Source: Mytilus edulis
Taxonomy: Eukaryota
DNA: 64,000 nt
Direction of reading: 5' to 3'
NCBI RefSeq assembly: GCF_963676685.1
Contig: NC_092348.1
Location: 90,644,001-90,708,000 of the forward strand
The notes under the pieces were generated by a model. That model made no database searches, was not told the DNA's origin, and worked only from the letters and a program-made list of their open reading frames with translations. The position numbers and the translations under genes were made by a program. Positions 38,366 through 54,100 of this stretch are shown piece after piece. The number at the start of each line of letters is the position of its first letter. The first letter of the stretch is position 1.

Positions 38366-41300
38366 TCAAATAGCCAGTGCATCACTTTGTATTTCATGAC
38401 TGAGTTGGGTTTGTAGATCACTGAGTTTTTTCTTCAGCACGGATAACGTTGAAAACATAATATTCTCAGGTCTCAGTGAACCACAGGATTCAACATTGTA
38501 GAAAAATTTGTTTGCTTTCCCAAGAGGATTTGGTTCTGCTTGTACTGAAACAGAAAAAACAAAATTATTGAGATTTAAATTTAGATGTACTAAATTACAA
38601 TGGAGAGAGAAAAACATATTGGGTTTAATGCCCCTTTTTATACATACTAGAAGACAGTCATTGGAAGGTGAATATAATTATATGTTTATTTTCGTATTAC
38701 ATTTCTTAATAACACTATTTGTCAGTAATTAACGCCACAAGAAACTCCTTCCATATTTGTTTTAAAATAATTTTTTTAAGTGTTATACAAATTTTATTTT
38801 GATAACTTTCACTGTGATGTGATGTGACTTTTTGATTTGTTTTTGGTCAAATTTTAAGTCATTTTAGTATATACATGTACACTCTAGTATATTATTTTTT
38901 AGATCTGTTGTTTTAATATGAAAAGTTCTTTCTAGAACATTATTGTAACTCCAGACGAGTCAGTCTTAGCTCGTTCCCCCGTGTGTTGGGCAGAAAACAG
39001 CAAATACAAATAATAATGTCTTTGATTAGACCTCCTAACAGATTAAAATACTAGACTTTTGTCATCTACAAGTATTTCACACTGAGAAAACTGTACAAAA
39101 CTACATATTAAGGTGGTACCCAACACTTTAACTAAAATTAATTTGGCTCGTTTAATTTTCTTCAAATTTTGAAAAAGTATTTACTTTGACCCTTTAACAA
39201 AAATATAAAAAAAATCAAAATATTTGAACCAACCGTTTTAACAGAAAAATTACACTGGTTATATAGCAGTTTGACAAAAACTTATTTTGATCTTTGAAAA
39301 GCTTGATTTTCCCTCAACAACACAACGTCATTAAAACGTTTAGCTGATTTTACAGAGTTCTCTCCCTGTAGTGTTAGGTACCACCTTAATGAAGTTTGAT
39401 ATTATACATACTTTCGTCTTCTTCAAGTTCTGTGTACTCACTCTTTGGCCTGTAATAATCATAGTGATTCAATTAATGTCAATTATAAAAGTATTTAATG
39501 TGATTATGCTATGAACTTTTACTTGAACAGGTCATAGCCTTTTTCTTAAAACTAGATACTAAACTGAGAATTCAGAAATTATTGAGGGCATTTATTATTG
39601 CTATTTTTCGAAAATGGAAAAAAATATGAGATCAATTATTGTGATTTTAGAAAAATCTACATACAGATCTATCGTAAGGTATAGAAATGTGAGTTCTTTT
39701 TATTACAATACTCACTTGAGTTGCATTATTTGCATTAATCAAAACCTCGCAATCATTTCGGAATTTACTGTATATAAATGGTTTAATGTGACTGTGCTGA
39801 ACTTTTATTTAAACAGGTAATAGCCTTTTTTTTTAAATGGATACTATACCTAAAGACTGGCAGTGTGTAATAATTTTCAGTACTGTAAATTCAGAAATTA
39901 TTGCGTCCTTTTATTATTGCCATTTTGTCATTTTAATCTTTATGATTGTGCCAAAAATCCTGTTTAATTCATATAAAATATTTCAAAAAGCAGGTTTAAA
40001 TTATTGCGTTTACAACTCTGTCGCATTTTTCGCAATAATAAAAACCTCGCAAAAATTTCTGAATTTACAGTACATGAAATTTTTTGTGGAAATACACCAA
40101 CCAGATTAGATATCTATATGTTTAAAGTAAAATTACTTTGATGTTAGAATACTTAACATTTTTGTATGAAAAGTTTTGGTCCTATAGAATTAAACGAGGT
40201 TCATGATGGACCATTTTAGGTCAATTTTTTACAAAATCATATATAGATATAGTAAGATGTGGTGTGAGTGCCAATGAGACAACTCTCCATACAAATAACA
40301 ATTTAAAAAGTAAACCATTATAGGTTAAAGTACGGCCTTCAACACGGAGCCTTGGCTCACACCGAACAACAAGCTATAAAGGGCCCCAAAATTACTAGTG
40401 TAAAACCATTCAAACGGGAAAACCAACGGTCTAATCTATATAAACAAAACGAGAAACGAGAAACACGTATATATAACATAAACAAACGACAACTACTGTA
40501 CATCAGATTCCTGACTTAGGACAGGTGCAAACATTTGCAGCGGGATTAAACGTTTTAATATGACTATTACAGAAATAAGAATTGACAGTCTTCTTACATG
40601 AGATTTATATTGGTATACTATTATTTGGATATACCTACCATTCTTCTGGTTTTGGATAGATTGTATGTCTCAGTGCATTATCTGGATCATACTCGAAGGC
40701 TACACCACAGGTTGGATTCCACTTAGCATGCTCCTTGGCAAATCCTTTCCTGGCAAAGGCTCTAACTTTCAATTCCTGTCCTTTTCTTAATTTGACTATT
40801 AAGATATCTATAAAAAAAATAAACAATTCCTATTGATGAGAAATTGCTCAGGTGTACTTATGTATGGCCAAGGTGAAGTCTATTAAAGAAATCGCTTGAT
40901 TGTGTATTGTTTATATTGACAAAGTAGGTTTTATCTGGATAGTCCTGCAACGTTATTGTTGTGTTATCTTGGCTGTTGAAGCACATTTATTTATGACATT
41001 TTGAACAATATGCATGAATTATCATTGATTGCAGTAACTTTGTCCTTCTGACCTCTCTTTAAGTAAAATTAATGATATTGTGCTCTTTGAATACTGTAGT
41101 AGAAAATCTGTGACATATTCATTAGGATAGGCGTCAATATTTTCTTTTTGTGTTCTGATGTTTGTGTTCTGATGTTTGTGTTCTTATGTTTGTGTTCTGA
41201 TGTTTGTGTTCTGATGTTTGTGTTCTTATGTTTGTGTTCTTAGGTTTGTGTTCTGATGTTTGTGTTCTGATGTTCATAGTCAATTTTAACTTACCATCTG

Positions 41301-44300
41301 TTTCTTCATATTCACTTGCTTCTTCTTTTCTTTTAGATGTTACCTAAGGATATAATAACATAGCATGAGCTTTTAGATGTTACCTAAGGATATAACAATA
41401 ATATAGCATGAGCTTTTAGATGTTACCCAAGGATATAACAATAATATAGCATGAGCTTTTAGATGTTACCTAAGGATATAACAATAATATAGCATGAGCT
41501 TTTAGATGTTACCTAAGGATATAACAATAACAGCATGAGCTTTTAGATGTTACCTAAGGATATAACAATAATATAGCATGAGCTTTTAGATGTTACCTAA
41601 GGATATAACAATAATATAGCATGAGCTTTTAGATGTTACCCAAGGATATAACAATAATATAGCATGAGCTTTTAGATGTTACCCAAGGATATAACAATAA
41701 TATAGCATGAGCTTTTAGATGTTACCTAAGGATATAACAATAATATAGCATGAGCTTTTAGATGTTACCCAAGGATATAACAATAATATAGCATGAGCTT
41801 TTAGATGTTACCTAAGATATAACAATAACAGCATGAGCTTTTAGATGTTACCTAAGGATATAACACTAATATAGCATGAGCTTTTAGATGTTACCTAAGG
41901 ATATAACAATAATATAGCATGAGCTTTTAGATGTTACCTAAGATATAACAATAACAGCATGAGCTTTTAGATGTTACCTAAGGATATAACAATAATATAG
42001 CATGAGCTTTTAGATGTTACCCAAGGATATAACAATAATATAGCATGAGCTTAAAATGCTTTCATTACTTAGATGAAATGCTGTAAACGGTTTATGAAAT
42101 ACTATCACACTATCTTGAAATTATTATATATCTATACAATACAGTTGTGGTGTCAGCAAACTATAGGGTGACTTAACATATGATTTTATACTTGGCCTTG
42201 AGAGCATGAATAGCCAAAATTTATCAAAAAATATATTGGAGTCTTATGCATGCTCAAAGTTGTGGACTTTAGTTATGTTTTTGTATAAATCAGTTCATAT
42301 ACTCATGGAACTTCTACCTAGATTACTCTAAGTTAAATTTGAAAAGGTTGATGAACCCTGTATTTCTAATATCCATTTACAGTTTTGTATTTCTACTTTC
42401 TGTTTACAACTTCACATTTCTACTTTCTATTTACAGAAAATGGAAACCCTATGAATTGACCCATCATGTCTGAACAATTTAACCCTTTAACAAAGACAGT
42501 CAGTAGAACTGTTCCAGTGACTAATCCACCTAGTTTACAAAGTATCTGTAGGAATACCATTCTACATGCTATTACACTCAAAAGGATCAAACAGGTAAAT
42601 ATTACACCATCATGAGCATTCAGAGGTTTTGGTGATGAAAAAAACCCACAAAAATTCCTTTTTAAAGTTTTACAATAGCATGTTTTTTTTGGCCTCATAT
42701 GATGTAAACTTCTGAATTAGGTAGTAGTCACAAAGCTAATAGGTAAGTCACAATCTCTAGAACATATTCTACATTAGAATTCAGTACTAAAACAATTGGG
42801 AACTAACAAACTGTAAATTTGTTCATAAGAATTTCATCCTTTAACAGAATAAAATTTTATTCAATCCTTTTCATTCCCAAAAAAGAGTTGATTTCATGAT
42901 CCACCCATCAAATTAACACAGTTATCTTCATTAATCAATACAACAAAGAACTTCTTTTCTGTTGTGTTACACAGGCACTATTTTTTTTCATTTTTTTTTC
43001 ACATGTACGTAACATCATTAACTTGTACATGACAAATTAAGAGTAATGTATATTAAACAGAGTTCTCGAAATCTTTATTTGCCTAGTGGTCCTTGAAGAA
43101 AATATGCAGGTCCTCACTATCATTTCTATTGAAAATTGTAAAAACCAAAATTGTGTTGGTTCTTCTCAAAAATGTGGTGGTCAAATCCCTAGGACAACCA
43201 CTTATTGAGAACTCTGTATATATTCAGATACAATTTTTACTAGTTTTTTGACTCCATAAGAAATGCAATTTGTACAGATAATAATGTAATTTTCTGTTTT
43301 ATCATTTTTAGGCTGACGAGTCACTTCCCTTGCCTAAACCTCTGATGAGAACAGTCAGTGTTCTCAACTTGAAGGATTTTGTCATCGATGCAGAAAAATT
43401 AGAACCTACTAATCACCTGAGAGAAAGCTACCCAGCTACATGTATCTTTGATGGGATCCCATGTATCATCAAAGTCAAATCTAAAGGTATTCCATACAAA
43501 TTTACCGTACATTTTCCATTTAAAAATATTTAATACTGAATGTTGTCATTTTTTTGAGGTGTTGGAAATTCATTTATGTTCTTAAAGCATAAATCAAGCC
43601 GTTAACGTTGTTTTTCACTTTTGAATTGTTAATTTGTCATTCTGAGGCATTTAATATCTCACTATATCAAGGGGTTTGTTCATTGTTGAAGGCCAAACAA
43701 TATCCTTTAGTTAACATCCAGTTGATATATATTTGTCTCCTTGCCAATCATACCACATCTCTTTATTTTCATATTAATAAATGTTTTGCCTTTGTCCTAC
43801 AGATAGTAAGCCAGAATTAGATAACCCAAGCTTCATGGCATCGTTTGAAGACAAGAACTCTGTCTGTTGTGTTTATGAAGTAACAGATACTCTTAAAGAT
43901 AGAATTGTACAATGCAAACTCCAAAACACCAGATTCCAAGAGGTTTTTATATGGCGTTTAGCAAAGACACTTTTGGAGTTCGCACTAAATGAAAAGATAA
44001 CTCTGTCTACAAAAGTAAACAGTACCATGATACATTTTTACGGTCCAAAAGGAACGATATTTCTTGAAGCCACTGATAATCCAATGACCGAGATGATGGG
44101 AGCTGATTCAGCCATCTACGAGGCTCCGGAGGTTTTAAGACAGGAAGAACCAACTAACCAAGCGTTTTCATGGACTGTTGGGTGTATCATTTATGAAATG
44201 TTGGCATTGGAACCTGCCTTCTTTGACAGAACTGGTACTAATCCATTTCAAGTATTTATGGACATGATGCAAGGCATACTACCCCCTGAACCTACAGAGG

Positions 44301-47300
44301 GTAGTCCAGAAATAATAGAAATAATGTGGCACTGTTTTAAAACAGATCCTGCTAAAAGAATTCCTCCAGAAGATTTGCTTAGATTTGCAATAGCCCATTC
44401 AGAATAAAGCTTCTTTTATATAACATATCAAATGTTTAGCTCGAAAACAGCTTGGTTATTTTGTTAAGAATCTCTATTTGATTGCTTTTTACCCTATTAA
44501 TGATTCATTTATTATACCTCTCTTTTTATAAAAATAAATGTCAAATTTTATCAATCTCTTTTAAATGTAAAAATGCACTGACTGATTTTAATCCCTATCA
44601 ATGTTTTATACAGATTGTATGTTTTATCAATAAAGTATTATTATACATGTAATCAGTAATAAATTCAATTAATCCGTTACACAGCTTTTAACAAACTTGA
44701 TACATCATGGCTGTCATTTTTTTAAAGGTGGAGGAAGCTAGATTACTTAGAAAGAACCACTGACCTTCCACAGTTAAACTGGAAATCCAAGTCAATTAAG
44801 ATCAAAGTCAAACCCATCTTGCCATATTGACAGGCCAGGGTTCACTGTAGAGAACTTGACCACAACTAGATATGTTTTTGGCCCCACTATTTCAGATTCA
44901 TTTAATTGCCTACTTTCTCATATTGTGCCTTTGATGAAAGTATAATGGAATAAAAATAATGAATTTGTAAAATTTCTTTAATTTTATCTAATCTCAACTC
45001 CAATATCAAATACAAGGAATACATGTATTCCAAAAATTGAAATTTGGTATAGTCAAAACAACTTTACACAACCATTCTGTGATAGCAGATGAGAAAAATT
45101 TCACTTAGAATTTGTTATGTTATCAAGGAAGAAGTGATCAAATTTACATACACTATCAATGAAAATATATCCAGTACACATCCACCTCTCAACAATCAAC
45201 ATACCTCACCAAAACATCATTACAGTATTCCACCTTTAAAAAAGTGCATCACATTTAAGGTTTAAGAAGGTTCCAACTTGTCATTTTACCAAAAGCAATG
45301 TGATTTGATTTGAATTGATTTTTGGTGTTTTATCGCCCCTTTTTAGCACCACATTTAGGCAAATTCGTGGCAGCCAGTATTTTTTGGTGGAGGAATTTGA
45401 GTGCCCTAAGAATACCATGACCTTCGATAAGAAAAACTGACAATCCTAGTCTATTAAGATTGGACATGAGTGCACCTGCAGGAGCGTGGTTTGAACGCAC
45501 AACCTCAGTGTTGACTGGCTAGTGATTCAATAGTAACCACTTATACCTCTCGGCCACCCAGGCCCCAAACAGCAATGCGAGAGGTAGACAGATACTGTAA
45601 ATGACAAAAGTACCGTGGATTACTTACAGGAACACATTTAGGATTACTGGAGATGAGATGTGCACTAGTTACGTGGGTGGTCTGGTCATCGTTACATTTC
45701 ATATCCAATGTGAACTCTACTGAACACTCCGGACAAAACTCTTCACAAGTACAATCCTGAAAACAAATGTGCAAATAATTATTTATATACTGGAAATTCC
45801 ACAAATTTACACATGCATTTATATTCTTCTAAAAAGTAAAAAGAAATCAAAGTTGCTACATTTATTTTATAAAATACTACAAACAAATAGTGCTATTTAA
45901 ATTTAAAATTCTTATTAAAACCTATCTTGTCACAATAATAAAGACTTTTTTTATTACCAGCTATCAAGTAAACCTTAAAACTGTACAATTTGTTTTGACC
46001 AACCCCATTATATAAAACACATAACTTCTTTAAATCAAAGTGATGGATATCACTCATGGAAAGATTGGAGTAGTTTGAATAATTTCATATCAAGGTATGG
46101 TGGGGACAAAAAAGAACATTAATAATATTGAAGCACTAATGCTGAAAATTACATTAACAGCCGGTCTTTAGAAGGAAAAGTGCTTTTCCAGTATGAATAT
46201 AAAATGAGCTCAAATTAAATAACATGGGTCTAAAAAAATTGCAAATCTAAAATTTTCCTAGTTAATTTCACCAACAATGTTGATTAGTAATGAGGTCAAT
46301 TTAATTCGCAGTTAAGGAGGTGGGCAAAGTAATTAAAGGTCCACCTTGTCTCTGATTGTTTGGTGATAATGACAGTTGTCAATCATACTAGTATTGTATC
46401 AATACTCAATTAATTATGCAAACTAATTAAAAAGCCTGCACATGAACACACCCTAATGACATACATTCTTAAATGAACCGCTCCAAAAATATACCCATTT
46501 TTTCACAATTATATGTGTATTCTGTGCACATACATGAGAACTATATGAGCTATATTTCAGTGCAGTGAATACATTTAGTAGCTAACCAGTCGTGTTGTTA
46601 AGGAGGCCAGTGCCTTAAGAAAGATTTAGAACAAGTTCCAATCTTTCCAAAAACCCATCAACTTCCTCAGAAAATAAAACCATATTCACTTTCCCCTCTG
46701 AGTTTTCGGTACCAAAAATGAACAACATATAAAATATCACATATATATATAATCTTTAAGTAGCTATCATAGCAACTCAAAGATTATATGCATGTGATTG
46801 TATGGGTTGTTAACAAATAGAATGATATGTTTTCATTAAAAGTCGAGAAATACAGTAATTATACACACAAGATGATTTGTTCAAATTCCACCACAGCTGG
46901 TGAATAGTGAATCCCATTAAAACAGGATAATTGGTGATAATTAAAAGAGTTAGAACAATCAGATAATATCTAATGAATAAACAAACAGTATACACATTTC
47001 ACATTGTTGAAGGCTATACCATGGCCTACAGTTGCCAACATCCATTTTATTAAAGCTCTAAAGGTAACTCTTTGGCAATCATACCACATCTCCTTATTTC
47101 ATACAATCATAACCATTCGATCATTGTGAAAATTCACAAGAGTTATAACAAAGTGAACATAAATTTCGGCTGTTCGGAGTGAGTTGAAGGCCGTACATTG
47201 ACCTATAATGGTTTACTTTTATAAATTTTTATTTGGATGGAGAGTTGTCTCATTGGCACTCACACCACATCTTCCTATATCTATATAAAGTGAACACATT

Positions 47301-50300
47301 GTGAGTACTCTTAGATGATATATAAAGTACATATTCAACTTTTAATACTTTACTCTACTTTGATAAGTAATCACATATGCATGCTTGAAATTATTTAAAA
47401 CAGATTTTTTATTCAAACTGCTGTTGCCTTCAAACATGAAGTAGTCTATTTTTTATCATTTTTATCTGCTGACGATTGCAACACTTGTTTTAAAATAATA
47501 ACACCATCTGTATAAGACCTTTAGCCAATTGTGTGTGCCCTTTTTAAAAATGGTTGATTAAAAAAGCTCAGTATCTCATACTTTATAAAGTCTGAAATGT
47601 TATAGAGTACACCCACAAAATCCTTTTCTGTTGATTATAATCTTACTCTGGAATACTGCATCCTGTCCACTATTTCATCACTGGTCAGTGGTATTAAACC
47701 TATTCTGTGGGCCAGAAACTCATCAAATAACACTGTAGAATTGGATTCCATCTGTACCCAATCTATTGCTGAAATTCATAACATAAACATCACAAACATA
47801 GGGAGATTTAAATAAAAGGACTAATATTGTAAAAACATTATGTTTTACATATTTACCTTATCAAAATGCTTATTGAGAATGTAGACTTGTGTAATAAATT
47901 GTCCGTTCAATTACTTAAGACAAACTGTGTGACAGGGTTATACATATTTCAACCCTCTCTCTGACTTGCAACAGACTGAAAAATGACATTCAAAAAAATT
48001 GTTACTGTTACCTGTTTTTTTCCATATCATTAAGGAAAGTTCACTAAGGAGTTAGGCTGTTTTCTTTGTAGTTTTAGTGAAAAATAAAACTTCAATCTAC
48101 GTGCATGTTTTTTCAATATAAAATACCATACTTATAAATGTTATATAATTTCCTATCATATTTACCCATGGTTGGAACTTCAGCTATGCATACTCTTCTA
48201 ACAGCATTTGCAACACTGTAAAACAAATAAAATGAAATATAATCAGTATTAAATGTATAGCTATAGAAGTTCATTCCTTCAATCTTCAAGGCGGAGGTAC
48301 AAAATGTATAGAAACTATAAACATAATTTTTCATCATGAAAAAAACAAAATATTTTCGTCCTCGTCACAATCAGTAAAGAATTATGTTTTTAAAAGTAAT
48401 ATTGAACTATTATTTTTTTCAGAAATTTCAACCAATGTAAATTTCAAATGTCTGTTACTGTGTATTTTTTTCCAAATACCATTTGTTTTTAATACTCATA
48501 CATACATTTTTACATGTATATCTAATTAATCAAAATACTTCAATGTTAGAATGAAGTTACCTGATAACATTGAACAAATCCTTTGATCACATTAAAATTA
48601 ACAATATATAAGAATACCAAAATACCATGACCTACATGATGACAATTTCTCTTTTTTTTGTAAAGCAAAACACTATACACCATTAATATCACTGTATACT
48701 TGTCCATCATTGATTGACAGAAGATTTGAATCTATTCATATACATTTGTACCTAAGCTTTTTAAAGTTCTAGTTTATCAATAGTTGATACCATTAGAGGG
48801 ATAGGGGGAATTAAAAATAAATTAAAGGTCTAAGAAAACTAGACAAAACCATGTAAAAGATAAACAAAAGTCCAATTAAAAATCCAGAGAAAACAACATC
48901 TAAACATTACAAATACCATAATACCAGCTCAATCTAAAATACGATTGAACACCTACATGTATATAGTGCCCTACACTGCAACTGTGATGGTTACAAACCA
49001 ATCCAGTCATGCTAGTGCTATTCCATAAAATAGTATAGCAATTTACTCTAAAAAAAACTTATTATTACAAGAAACACTTATGAACCACATCAACAAAAGG
49101 ACAACTACTGAACAACAGTTCCTGACTTGATTAAGACATGTGCAAACAAATGCAACCGTTGAACCCTTACCTGAACCAGAAGAATAACATTACAATTTAA
49201 AACATAAAAAAACACATTTTATTAAATTAATGTTATGTACTAAAACAGATGTACTGAAACATAATGTCTATAATGATAACGTATACCACCATTTAGTATC
49301 AGACAATCCCTCAAGTGAATGGATAAACAAATTATTGAGTTATTATAAGATTTAAACCTCTATCCCATAAAGAATACAGATATCAAACTGAAAGTCTATA
49401 TGTATTTTAAATATGCACTATTTAAATAATTCTCTGGCACTAATAGGTGTAAATAGAGCTTGATCTAGTCCAAATAATTACAATGTATGAGTCTTGAAAG
49501 GCCATTATAATTTTTTTCTTTCATGCCTTAACTTGATCATGATTTTTACATTTCGGTATATATTCTTTGTTTTTTAAGATTTTTAACATAAAGTTGGCTC
49601 CAAGTTTTCAAGAACTGGCGACAAAGTATAGAAGCTATCAATTTGTCTGGCTCCAATTTTTTGTGAGCCAGAGCAGCCCCTGCTTTGTAGAGAAGAAGTT
49701 CAGTTATGTCTTCTTCTTCTTCCGAATACGTGAGTAGACACCTAGGTAGGAGTGTAAAACTTCCCGGAACTTGTGTGCTATGTACATATGGACTTAATTT
49801 AAAAATAATATGACAAAGAAAAATCGTTAACAATAACATATATACATTATGTACAGTGGCTTTGTAGTTCAATAAGTTGTTGTGGATCCTTCAAATGTTA
49901 GAGTGGATATGCCACTTTTGAAGGATTCCAGGGTGTCAGACATACCTATTGCTTCAGGTAGTGAGTTCCAGTCCGAAATAGTGCGAGGATAAAATGAGAA
50001 TTTATAGAAATCTTTATTTGTTGATATTTGCCTAAATTTATGTTTCCCCCTAGTACGTCTATCAGATATTGTAAAATTGTCCTTAGGAACTTCAACTAAC
50101 CCCCCAATTTATTTTAAATAGCATAGTTAATCTAGCTTTTTTCCTTTTTATTTCTAAATTTTCGGAATTCCCATTCCAATGATTTAATTAAATTTGAAAC
50201 TGCTCCAGGTGATCTGTCTTTATAATCATTGAAGACAAACCTGGCTGCCTTACGCTGTACCTGCTCAACCTGAGTGATGTGTTGTTTTAGTACGGATCCC

Positions 50301-50854: not shown

Positions 50855-51179
50855 TTTTTCTCGATTGTGTCTTTCAAAAAATCCTCACATCATAAACCGG
50901 AAATAAAACCGTCCTGTCCCATTGAAATTTTTAGGGGTGGGCAGGTTACAAAAAAATCTTTGAAATCAGTTTTATGCCGAGATCTTCACAAATACTTCTT
51001 AATGAAAGAACAAGCTCTTCGTTTTGAACAATAAAATACTTAAAGATTGACATTGCTAGGCATATAATATGTTTTTTTTTATAAAAATATCAAACATACC
51101 CTACAGCAATTTATTTGACACATCTTGTTTACTTCCGGTTTCGGGACAGCTGTGGTCCTCAGAAACAAACAGCATAAAC
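50855..51179. promoter_or_regulatory. Probable bidirectional promoter shared by POLR2C and RPRD1
   Basis: Divergent ATGs are 325 bp apart. ETS/GABP-type cores CCGGAA (50897-50902) and ACTTCCGG (51131-51138) each lie close to one start codon, in opposite orientations. Confidence 0.7.
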
Positions 51180-54100
51180 ATGTCTTCATTTACAGATAGC
51201 AACTTCGTAAAGAAATTAAGCGAACTGAACAACACACAGCAGAGTATTCAGACGTTATCATTATGGCTGATTCACCACAGAAAGCATTCAAAAACCATCA
51301 CCCAAGTATGGCTGAGAGAATTGCAAAAAGGTCAGTATACCTGTCCACAAATCTTATACACAGAACAGCACGTGTAACGTGTCTAAAATGTCAAAATTGT
51401 ATATCTCTGATGAAGATAAAACTTACAACATTGAGTTGACATTCTGCAATGCTAGCTAGTAACTGCCATTGTCTGTAAAGGTGCACTTGCAAGCCACAAA
51501 AGAAGTTTTTGTCTCAAGAAAAGGTTAGGACCAGCTACATGTACCTGAATGAGTTAAACATACATGAACCATAAGGAAGCAGGACAAATCGCCCCACTGG
51601 CAAATCGCCCCACCCCTAATCGCCCCACTTCTTCACCAACTCGCCCCACTTTAAAAAAAAACGCCCCAAACTGATTCACCAAATCGCCCCACATTTTTAA
51701 AAATCGCCCCACATGTGAAATGTGTTAAATCCTGTTAATATTACTCCTGCCAACTCGCCCCACTTAATAGAAAACGGTAATATCTAGATTAATATATAAT
51801 TTTCATGTCTGCCAACTAGCCCCACTTTAATGAAAACTAATCTACACAAAATACAAACAAACTGAAAATTTATGTTATTTCTATTATTGATATACTGGAA
51901 TTATAATTCTAAATATAATTTTCGTATTGTTGGAGAATAACTGTATTCTTGTAATCTTAGTTATTTGCCAATTGAAAAGAAACCTGTTATATTAAACATA
52001 TCAAAGGATTTCAATTAACAGCAATTTTGTTATCATAGCAATTACTGGATTGGTTACTTTTGTCTCTGAATTAAGAATAATTCAACACTAACGAGCAATC
52101 AGAAAATGATGTTCCTAACCTTATTTCTGTTTTATTTCAACTATGCAGAAGAAAGTACAAAAAAAAAGAAGCATTTCAAACGTTCTCATAAGTGGGACCA
52201 ATTGGAAAGCCAACACACATTCATGACATTACAGTTTAATTATTTTATTCGTAAGTGGTGCTAGTTGGAAGCCTTTAACTCTATTCATACTTGTACTTTT
52301 CATAAGTGGGGCTAGTTGGCATAAATCAATTCATCAGGATTTTTCTATTTTTCACAAGTGGAGCGAGTTGACATTCACGTTATCAAAATACTAAAAAAAA
52401 ATAATCACTTCTTACTGCTATTTAAAAAAAAAGGAATAACATATATATATGTTACAGTAAATAGGTGAAATTAGGAATTACACGTAATTACTAAACATTT
52501 CAGTAAATACCTGTAATCACTAGTCAATTTAGTAATTACATGTATTTACTTGTTGTTTCAGTGATTACAGGTATTTACTGATTTTTTTTGTCATTTTTAC
52601 AGCTATTTACTAACTTGATATTTCTCTTTAAAAATTAAAGACATAATTCAAGATGTCAAATAAGAAAGTAAGGGGTAGGGATTTTTAGGGCTTACTTAAG
52701 GATCAAGGATGATAAGGCACATAAAAAGTGCATACTCTTCAGTGTTTGTAAATTGAAACTGGAAAATGGTTGTTTTATAAGTTTTGAAACTCCCTAAAAA
52801 TCATTTTGAACATGCAAGACAATGATATCAATCCAAAATTGAGAAAAACATTTTTGAGAAATTTATAGGCAACTTAGCCAGCTATTTAATTGTTAAGATA
52901 GACATTAGATTATGGCAAACTTGGTTAAATGATCTTTATAATTCTTAAAATCTCATAATTTTGTTATATTAAAATCTTCATCAGGCATACTCTGCATATC
53001 AACTCGGCCAATAACATGAGTTAAATTCCTTTTACAAAACAGGTTTAACTACGACTTCTTTTGTCAGACATTTGCGATGAAGCTGACATTCTTCACAAAC
53101 AAATTTATACAAATTGATGGCGTAAAGAGTCACATTTTCATATTTCCGTGTTTTTATGAGTTCTTCAAGACCTCAAAACTTAAGCTATATATCTCCAACA
53201 AAATTTTATCATCGTTTCTTCCTGTATAAGAATGATCTTTTTGTGGATTGAAAAAGTAAACTAAATGGTCCATCCCTTTTGTTTTACTTTCAATGTTGAC
53301 ATTTCTTTTCCTTTTCATCGAGCCTCTGTTTTTTTTTGTCGCAAAAGCGAGACATAGCGAACCAACCTAACAATTCCGTCGCCAGCTGCGTCCACAAATA
53401 TTCGCTCTGTGGTTATATTTTTTAAATTTTGATAAGTTTCTCAAATTATCCTGGATTTCTACCAAACTTGAACAGAAGCTTCAGTTGTTTATGATCAAAA
53501 GATACATTTCCAGAAGTAAATTTTGTAAAAAAAAAATTCCGTATTTTACTTATAAAGGGACTTAGTTTTTATGCCAGTTAACATTACATTCACACTGTGG
53601 TTAACTTTTAAAAAATTTAATAACTTCTCAAAATATCCTGGATTTCTGTCAAAATTGGATAGACGCTTGTTTATGATCATAAGATAATATCTAGAAATAA
53701 AGTTTGTAAAAAAAACTATACTTTTTGGTATATTTCTTATTTAAACGGACTATTTTTTTCCAGTTAACATAACATACACTCTGCAGTTAAAGATTAGATT
53801 TCATAAACCATCCTGAAATTTTAACAAATTTTGATAGAAGATTCTTACAGAACTAGTCAAAAGATAGTATCTAGAAGAAAATACAAAATATTTTTTTTCC
53901 TTTTTTGTTGGGCCTGCGACTCACAGCAAAAGTAGGCGAGACACTGGGTTCTGCAAAACCCTAAAATTTTGATAGCTGAATACTCAATGATTTTCTAATT
54001 AGTATTACCATAACTTTTGATCAGTGGACCATATTACAACATTGTTTTAACAGTTAGTAAATAGGTGTAAAAATTCAATTTAATTCAGTAATTACTGGTA

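Follow-up and report, generated by a model that had tools for sequence, protein, structure and literature searches.

What does a protein do that carries a SOCS box at one end and a kinase fold stripped of its catalytic motifs at the other? The question is raised by a gene of Mytilus edulis that lies antisense within an intron of POLR2C, in the window analysed here, i.e., the whole stretch of 64,000 nucleotides (nt) between positions 90,644,001 and 90,708,000 of the forward strand of contig NC_092348.1 (NCBI RefSeq assembly GCF_963676685.1). Its product of 302 amino acids (aa) is present in RefSeq as a Nek7-like protein (XP_071175978.1; P0195 below). Judging from sequence comparison and structure modelling, we consider it reasonably probable that this protein joins a SOCS box to a NEK6/7-derived pseudokinase and serves as a substrate receptor of a Cullin-5 (Cul5)-Elongin BC ubiquitin ligase, with recognition through the kinase C-lobe.

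A three-exon gene shared by Mytilus species

Read and translated exon by exon, the plus strand yields a nested gene of three exons with 909 nt, equal to 302 codons and a stop (Table 1). A preliminary description of the window had proposed three GT-AG exons splicing in frame to 302 aa, which the sequence matches exactly, with all of the quoted peptide strings present. Its statement that the gene is hidden has to be withdrawn, since RefSeq holds the identical 302-aa model and the gene is therefore annotated; in addition, the first open reading frame (ORF), of 49 aa, appears in the program-made ORF list when the length threshold is lowered. The exon translations are identical to P0195 at offsets 0, 43 and 102. 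Full-length analyses were carried out with P0195 or with P0001, the 92%-identical cluster representative, which was returned together with further relatives when exon 3 was searched and is itself 302 aa long.

The 90% cluster of P0001 contains four 302-aa RefSeq models, from M. galloprovincialis, M. edulis, M. californianus and M. trossulus, all of which carry the names Nek6-like or Nek7-like, and five more 302-aa members on contigs of 1.06-1.26 kb. Because the genomic locus measures 1.94 kb, these congener contigs are taken as intron-free, spliced, cDNA-type assemblies, and as such they show that both exon joins are used in a Mytilus congener. At the second junction they read G-I where the window reads D-S, and M. 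californianus reads likewise. The 1.37 Gb genome assembly contains a single copy of the gene. Sequence comparison confirms the locus as a real conserved protein-coding gene, and both the gene model and the sequences are already public, as the RefSeq model "Nek7-like" and, for some members of the family, with SOCS_box among the precomputed Pfam labels.

An N-terminal SOCS box

Residues 23-32 of P0195 (S23-L24-Q-S-I-C28-R-N-T-I32) form a BC box of the type S-L-x3-C-x3-I that fits the published consensus (A/P/S/T)-L-x3-(C/S/A)-x3-(A/I/L/V) (PMC3365428), and a Cul5 box, LPLP (L48-P49-L50-P51), stands 15 residues past I32. The Pfam profile SOCS_box (PF07525) matches the translation of exon 1 alone with an E-value (E) of 3.6e-4 and 21.1 bits, and P0195 with 26.0 bits against a gathering cut-off of 23.5, over residues 20-55 and profile positions 1-35 of 39. 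The same profile is matched at E 0.01 or better by 20 of the 24 family members described below (best E 6.4e-13). In an alignment of 44 sequences, L24, C28, R29, L48, P49 and P51 are among the best-conserved columns, with family conservation values of 0.90 for L24, 0.87 for C28, 0.97 for L48, 0.83 for P49 and 1.00 for P51.

The AlphaFold2 (AF2) model built from this 44-sequence alignment, with a predicted local distance difference test score (pLDDT) of 91.7 and a predicted template modelling score (pTM) of 0.87, places helices at residues 24-36, 41-47 and 52-59 behind a short hairpin; it supersedes an earlier model from 7 sequences that was weak at the N-terminus (pLDDT 70). The ESM Atlas contains the exact protein, and 10 out of 10 structural neighbours of residues 1-66 are SOCS-box families, including Rab40, SOCS5, WSB1/2, NEURL2, TULP4 and ASB15, the feature scores (0.76-0.80) being used as leads only. 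The profile match, the Atlas neighbours and the complex model described below agree with the earlier reading of the BC box and LPLP as a SOCS box, and residues ~20-60 are supported as a canonical three-helix SOCS box at the N-terminus. When exon 1 alone was searched against the PDB with phmmer, the sole match was a Kelch-type designed repeat (E 0.73), which was taken as chance.

Residues 14-66 of P0195 were then modelled in complex with a full-length invertebrate Elongin C from outside the mussels (P0240). The interface score ipSAE is 0.66, versus 0.00 for the best control, and passes a mark that 51 of 78 solved complexes attain in the benchmark, as do 2 of 108 mismatched pairs (for eukaryotes, 39 of 65 solved and 2 of 126 unrelated pairs); as SOCS box-Elongin BC complexes have already been solved, this pass indicates likeness and is no proof that the mussel protein binds. 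At least 90% of the contacts recur from run to run, the partner pLDDT is at least 56, and the modelled contacts bring L24, C28 and I32 onto residues 80-119 of Elongin C.

The mussel genome itself contains a gene for Elongin C, and the first coding exon of that gene (G000:C1:110976757-110976861; L007:1474-1674, minus strand) ends in M-L-S-G-P-G before an intron. Skp1 is found in the same genome at G000:C7:58855108-58856339.

Ahead of the SOCS box, residues 3-14 of P0195 contain a conserved F/Y-N/D-P-x-T/S motif that most of the family share. The model shows this motif, with confidence (pLDDT 86-90), as a beta-hairpin, which may add strands to the kinase N-lobe.

A kinase-like domain without catalytic motifs

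The Pfam profile Pkinase matches P0195 with E 2.8e-11 in the C-lobe only (residues 204-294, profile positions 160-258). In a phmmer search against the PDB, NEK7 chains are the best match (E 2.2e-7), with beta-2/beta-3 of the N-lobe also aligned, and the best solved relatives among the best 60 of 97 matches are NEK7, NEK1, ULK and MAPKAPK2. NEK7 is also the best Foldseek match, with E 1.5e-11 for the first AF2 model and 5.5e-13 for the second and template modelling (TM) scores of 0.57-0.66. A whole-protein search of the ESM Atlas returned generic kinase and tribbles clusters only.

To compare the catalytic motifs, 23 family members were aligned with three active NEK6/7-like references. The GxGxxG loop, the alphaC Glu, the HRD Asp, the catalytic-loop Asn and the DFG/DLG Asp are absent from all 23 members, and the alphaF Asp is retained in 2 members only. 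APE and the alphaH-I Arg are retained across the set, and the Y-x-A/P-P-E motif is kept. The beta-3 position is occupied by K in 15 members, R in 5, and E or Q in 2. In the mussel branch ~11 residues connect beta-3 to beta-4, which leaves no alphaC helix at all. Since the catalytic motifs are absent in all 23, the protein is classed as a NEK-derived pseudokinase and not as a NEK kinase. These results uphold the preliminary description as regards the NEK-like kinase fold, the missing Gly loop, HRD and DFG, and the shortened alphaC; the beta-3 Lys that it reported is present in the mussel protein (K97) but is not conserved in the family.

Across the 44 sequences, the best-conserved regions are the BC-box helix, the LPxP box and the APE-alphaF segment, with a very conserved alphaF/alphaG face, whereas what is left of the catalytic loop and of the activation segment is conserved least. 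This is the pattern expected of a protein-binding pseudokinase rather than of an enzyme. Residues ~61-302 are supported as a NEK6/7-derived kinase fold incapable of phosphotransfer.

Distribution of the family

An exhaustive profile search was performed over 1.84 billion cluster representatives. As a result, 24 proteins were found at E 1e-30 or better, about two dozen proteins of 300-460 aa aligned from the SOCS-box positions to the domain end, and at least 24 cluster representatives have the layout of a SOCS box plus a kinase-like domain; a profile word-search with alignment A3 added one member only. By cluster name, the members come from bivalves (Mytilus, Pinctada, Tegillarca, Saccostrea and Dreissena), gastropods (Patella, Bradybaena and Elysia), an annelid (Owenia) and cnidarians (Rhopilema and Actinia), and orthologues with the same architecture occur across phyla at identities from 65% down to 20%. 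The family, as delimited by these matches, is not a mollusc oddity and extends to an annelid and cnidarians. Spiralian members without alphaC make up one subgroup, and the cnidarian-containing members have an insert of alphaC length with a conserved Trp and no Glu.

A tree was computed from the kinase-domain columns only, together with the 58 best-scoring other (NEK-type) kinases from the profile search. The 24 SOCS-bearing rows occupy one side of a branch with a Shimodaira-Hasegawa-like approximate likelihood ratio test (SH-aLRT) value of 100; the tree label 'GDLGLGR' stands for a sequence signature only, which is not proven NEK6/7 orthology and carries no sister-group conclusion.

The family profile also aligns with 4-19 separate stretches of four much longer proteins, P0038, P0040, P0044 and P0055 (1953-3510 aa), in which related pseudokinases may stand in tandem arrays or have been fused in the gene models.

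Members of the family are automatically named Nek6-like, Nek7-like or hypothetical, and some UniRef names read "non-specific serine/threonine protein kinase". No named vertebrate, insect or nematode member is among the profile-search matches, which may be why the family has been overlooked. "Nek7-like" transcripts are differentially expressed in Mytilus (PMC12488463) and in the Manila clam (PMC7430831), neither being attributable to the present gene. Literature searches yielded, NRBP1 aside, no paper that describes a NEK-like or any other pseudokinase joined to a SOCS box. The architecture had been called unfamiliar at the outset, which agrees with these searches for the SOCS-NEK fusion, but NRBP1 is an earlier example of a pseudokinase that combines a BC box with a Cul5 box (PMC3365428).

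A predicted Cullin-5 receptor and its alternatives

In the mechanism that we propose, the BC-box helix would dock onto Elongin C, with Elongin B, the LPLP box would recruit Cullin-5/Rbx2, and the C-lobe of the dead kinase would provide the substrate-recognition surface, so that the protein would be a receptor subunit of a Cullin-5-RING ubiquitin ligase (CRL5). A Cul5-Elongin BC receptor with a dead kinase had been suggested from the first, and the SOCS box, the catalytic losses and the predicted Elongin C complex support that reading. From these we infer Elongin BC/Cul5 binding, ligase function and the existence of any substrate; that the substrates are partners of NEK6/7-type C-lobes is a guess. 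Evenly balanced, in our judgement, is the wider proposal of an undescribed, pre-bilaterian SOCS-box class, present in cnidarians and spiralians, of Cul5-Elongin BC receptors with an N-terminal box and a NEK6/7-derived pseudokinase, whose C-lobe possibly captures former NEK6/7 partners for degradation.

Several points weigh against the receptor assignment. The complex was modelled with a non-mussel Elongin C and without Elongin B, and its docking score may reflect memory of solved SOCS box-Elongin BC structures. Two members, P0002 (16.6 bits) and P0161 (18.2 bits), fall under the Pfam SOCS_box cut-off, and P0018 from Owenia gives no SOCS_box match in Pfam at E 0.01 or better. An N-terminal SOCS box is unusual, and the productive placement of Cul5 from that end is in question. 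The tree search was quick and the pseudokinase branches are long, so a single origin is supported, not proven.

It seems unlikely that the protein is instead a scaffold or allosteric regulator whose dead NEK6/7-like domain modulates a partner, with the SOCS box serving only the turnover of the protein itself or the titration of Elongin BC. Such a role is modelled on NEK7, which licenses NLRP3 independently of kinase activity, or on pseudokinases that regulate active paralogues. It would suit a kinase-like domain that is closest to NEK7 and whose top conservation lies on the APE/alphaF/alphaG docking face, not on the nucleotide pocket, and SOCS boxes can affect the stability of their own proteins. 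However, the Cul5-box prolines are as conserved as the BC box (L48 0.97, P51 1.00), which is expected if cullin recruitment matters and leans against a scaffold without directly separating the two readings.

A functional nesting, in which the gene is co-regulated with, or acts on, POLR2C or RNA polymerase II (Pol II) through antisense interference or ubiquitylation of the Elongin-Cul5 type, is highly improbable. It draws on the antisense position in the POLR2C intron and on a CID-domain gene that starts at ~51.07 kb on the opposite (+) strand from POLR2C, and Elongin A-Cul5 is known to ubiquitylate stalled Pol II. Position is, however, the sole support, nested genes are common in large invertebrate introns, and any single nesting event is likely to be much more recent than the origin of the family. 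The antisense placement would then be an ordinary nested-gene arrangement, and a tie to Pol II is speculation.

We find it scarcely credible that the protein is an atypical active kinase with non-canonical residues, like WNK or CASK, and that the database names are right. Such a kinase would account for K97 and for the automatic names, whereas none of the 23 members has the Gly loop, the alphaC helix, the HRD Asp, the catalytic-loop Asn or the DFG Asp, the beta-3 position is variable (K, R, E, Q), and Pfam Pkinase aligns with the C-lobe only (positions 160-258). Chance ORFs or a decaying pseudogene in the intron are virtually out of the question, given the intact frame, the product identical to the RefSeq model, the 302-aa orthologues in four Mytilus species with spliced congener contigs, and the same architecture in orthologues across phyla at 65% to 20% identity.

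Gene structure, host gene and neighbourhood

The features of the nested gene and its surroundings are collected in Table 1. Four minus-strand ORFs (48113-48337, 45541-45804, 40635-40826 and 38366-38617) match the Rpb3 Pfam families RNA_pol_L and RNA_pol_A_bac. The phases of the two POLR2C exons within the second and third of these ORFs are mutually incompatible without an intervening exon, and a scan of the interval for an open stretch with AG..GT flanks and a fitting phase gave one, which we infer to be a small exon encoding an acidic linker. With this exon and the zinc-loop exon on the minus strand as its borders, the host intron contains the pseudokinase gene in antisense orientation, as the preliminary description had stated.

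Table 1 Features of the nested gene, its host gene and their surroundings (window coordinates).
Feature	Positions	Strand	Remarks
27-nt repeats	42359-42440	+	three tandem copies immediately 5' of start codon 42466
Upstream ORF	ATG at 42441	+	4 codons
Exon 1	42466-42594	+	129 nt, 43 codons, ATG start; 43/43 identity to P0195; start codon, N-terminal F-N-P-x-T hairpin motif, BC box
Hairpin motif, residues 3-14	42472-42507	+	
BC box, residues 23-32	42532-42561	+	
Intron 1	42595-43311	+	717 nt, GT..AG, phase 0; falls between BC box and Cul5 box of the SOCS box
Exon 2	43312-43486	+	175 nt, 58 codons + 1 base, phase 1 end; 58/58 identity to P0195; Cul5 box LPLP, third SOCS-box helix, degenerate Gly-loop remnant, beta-2/beta-3 with K97
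Cul5 box, L48-P51	43324-43335	+	
beta-3 Lys, K97	43471-43473	+	
Intron 2	43487-43802	+	316 nt, GT..AG, phase 1; split codon G/AT = D102, as in P0195
Exon 3	43803-44407	+	605 nt, TAA stop 44405-44407; 200/200 identity to P0195; remaining kinase-like domain with Y-E-A-P-E, alphaF to alphaI and alphaH-I Arg, without alphaC helix, HRD and DFG
Candidate AATAAA polyadenylation-type signal	44533-44538	+	from sequence; ~126 nt 3' of stop; fits the 1.06-1.26 kb congener contigs
POLR2C exon	40639-40807	-	splice borders read from sequence
Putative small POLR2C exon, acidic linker	41295-41343	-	16 codons + 1 nt, AG..GTAAGT flanks, required phase; downstream border of host intron
POLR2C host intron	41344-45627	-	
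POLR2C/RPB3 exon, zinc-loop region	45628-45756	-	Pfam RNA_pol_A_bac E 1.1e-5; AG/GT borders; upstream border of host intron
Minisatellite	41134-42050		repeated T-Q-T-S-E-H-K in one minus-strand frame
CID-domain ORF	51069-51377	+	Pfam PF04818 E 5.9e-12

Upstream of the start codon, the 27-nt unit has the core ATTTCTAnTnTCnnTTTACAG. Two of its three copies terminate in TTTACAG, which resembles a 3' splice acceptor, and the middle copy in TTTACAA; the repeats could be an acceptor marker in the 5' untranslated region or a repeated promoter element. The upstream ORF lies downstream of them. The minisatellite is situated within the POLR2C intron, between the 5' end of the nested gene and the small exon. 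The CID ORF, of the Pol II CTD-interacting type, begins ~2.7 kb past the most upstream POLR2C exon identified (48113-48337, minus strand), and the CID gene and POLR2C, both related to Pol II, would be arranged head to head.

Significance and relation to known systems

The classification of SOCS-box proteins follows the recognition domain and comprises a handful of classes; a dead-kinase class, if true, would be a new wiring of the Cullin-5 ligase and, next to NRBP1, the second example of a pseudokinase that independently became a ligase receptor. The members would be CRL5 receptors that have their SOCS box at an unusual, N-terminal position and a recognition domain of a new kind, for which NRBP1 and Tribbles are the conceptual precedents. 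The database labels as active Nek6/7-like kinases are probably wrong, and such mislabelling could distort kinome counts as well as the results of expression studies on bivalves and cnidarians.

NEK6/NEK7 are the closest solved relatives by sequence and fold; they are likewise ~300 aa long, and the beta-2/beta-3 and alphaF-alphaG segments are collinear. In contrast to them, the mussel protein lacks the Gly loop, the alphaC Glu, HRD, DLG/DFG and the alphaF Asp, and the mussel branch the whole alphaC helix; it carries an N-terminal SOCS box, which is reported for no NEK. In the kinase columns, a separate branch unites the 24 members and sets them off from the 58 other (NEK-type) kinases that scored best in the profile search.

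Tribbles (TRIB1-3) are likewise pseudokinase substrate adaptors for an E3 ligase, and they occur among the Atlas feature neighbours and Foldseek matches (5cem) of the mussel protein. They recruit COP1 via a C-terminal tail motif, not Elongin BC/Cul5 via a SOCS box, and their lineage is CAMK-like, different from that of the present family.

NRBP1, also a pseudokinase, is the functional analogue. It has a working BC box together with a CUL5 site, and CUL5 is recovered in its precipitates only in the presence of Elongin B/C (PMC3365428). The homology is limited to the shared kinase fold, and NRBP1 belongs to a different kinase lineage, being related to the WNK kinases (PMC12266122). No NRBP chain is among the best 60 of 97 PDB sequence matches obtained with phmmer. 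The BC box of NRBP1 lies C-terminal to its kinase-like domain, whereas the mussel protein has a full Pfam SOCS box N-terminal to its own.

The classical SOCS-box classes (SOCS/CIS-SH2, ASB-ankyrin, SPSB-SPRY, WSB-WD40, Rab40-GTPase, NEURL2 and TULP4) share with the mussel protein the Pfam score, the BC-box and LPxP consensus, the three-helix fold and the modular combination of a box with a recognition domain, and the Atlas neighbours of the mussel box are exactly these classes. They carry the box at or near the C-terminus, whereas in the mussel protein the box is N-terminal and the predicted recognition domain is a dead protein kinase, a domain type that none of these classes has.

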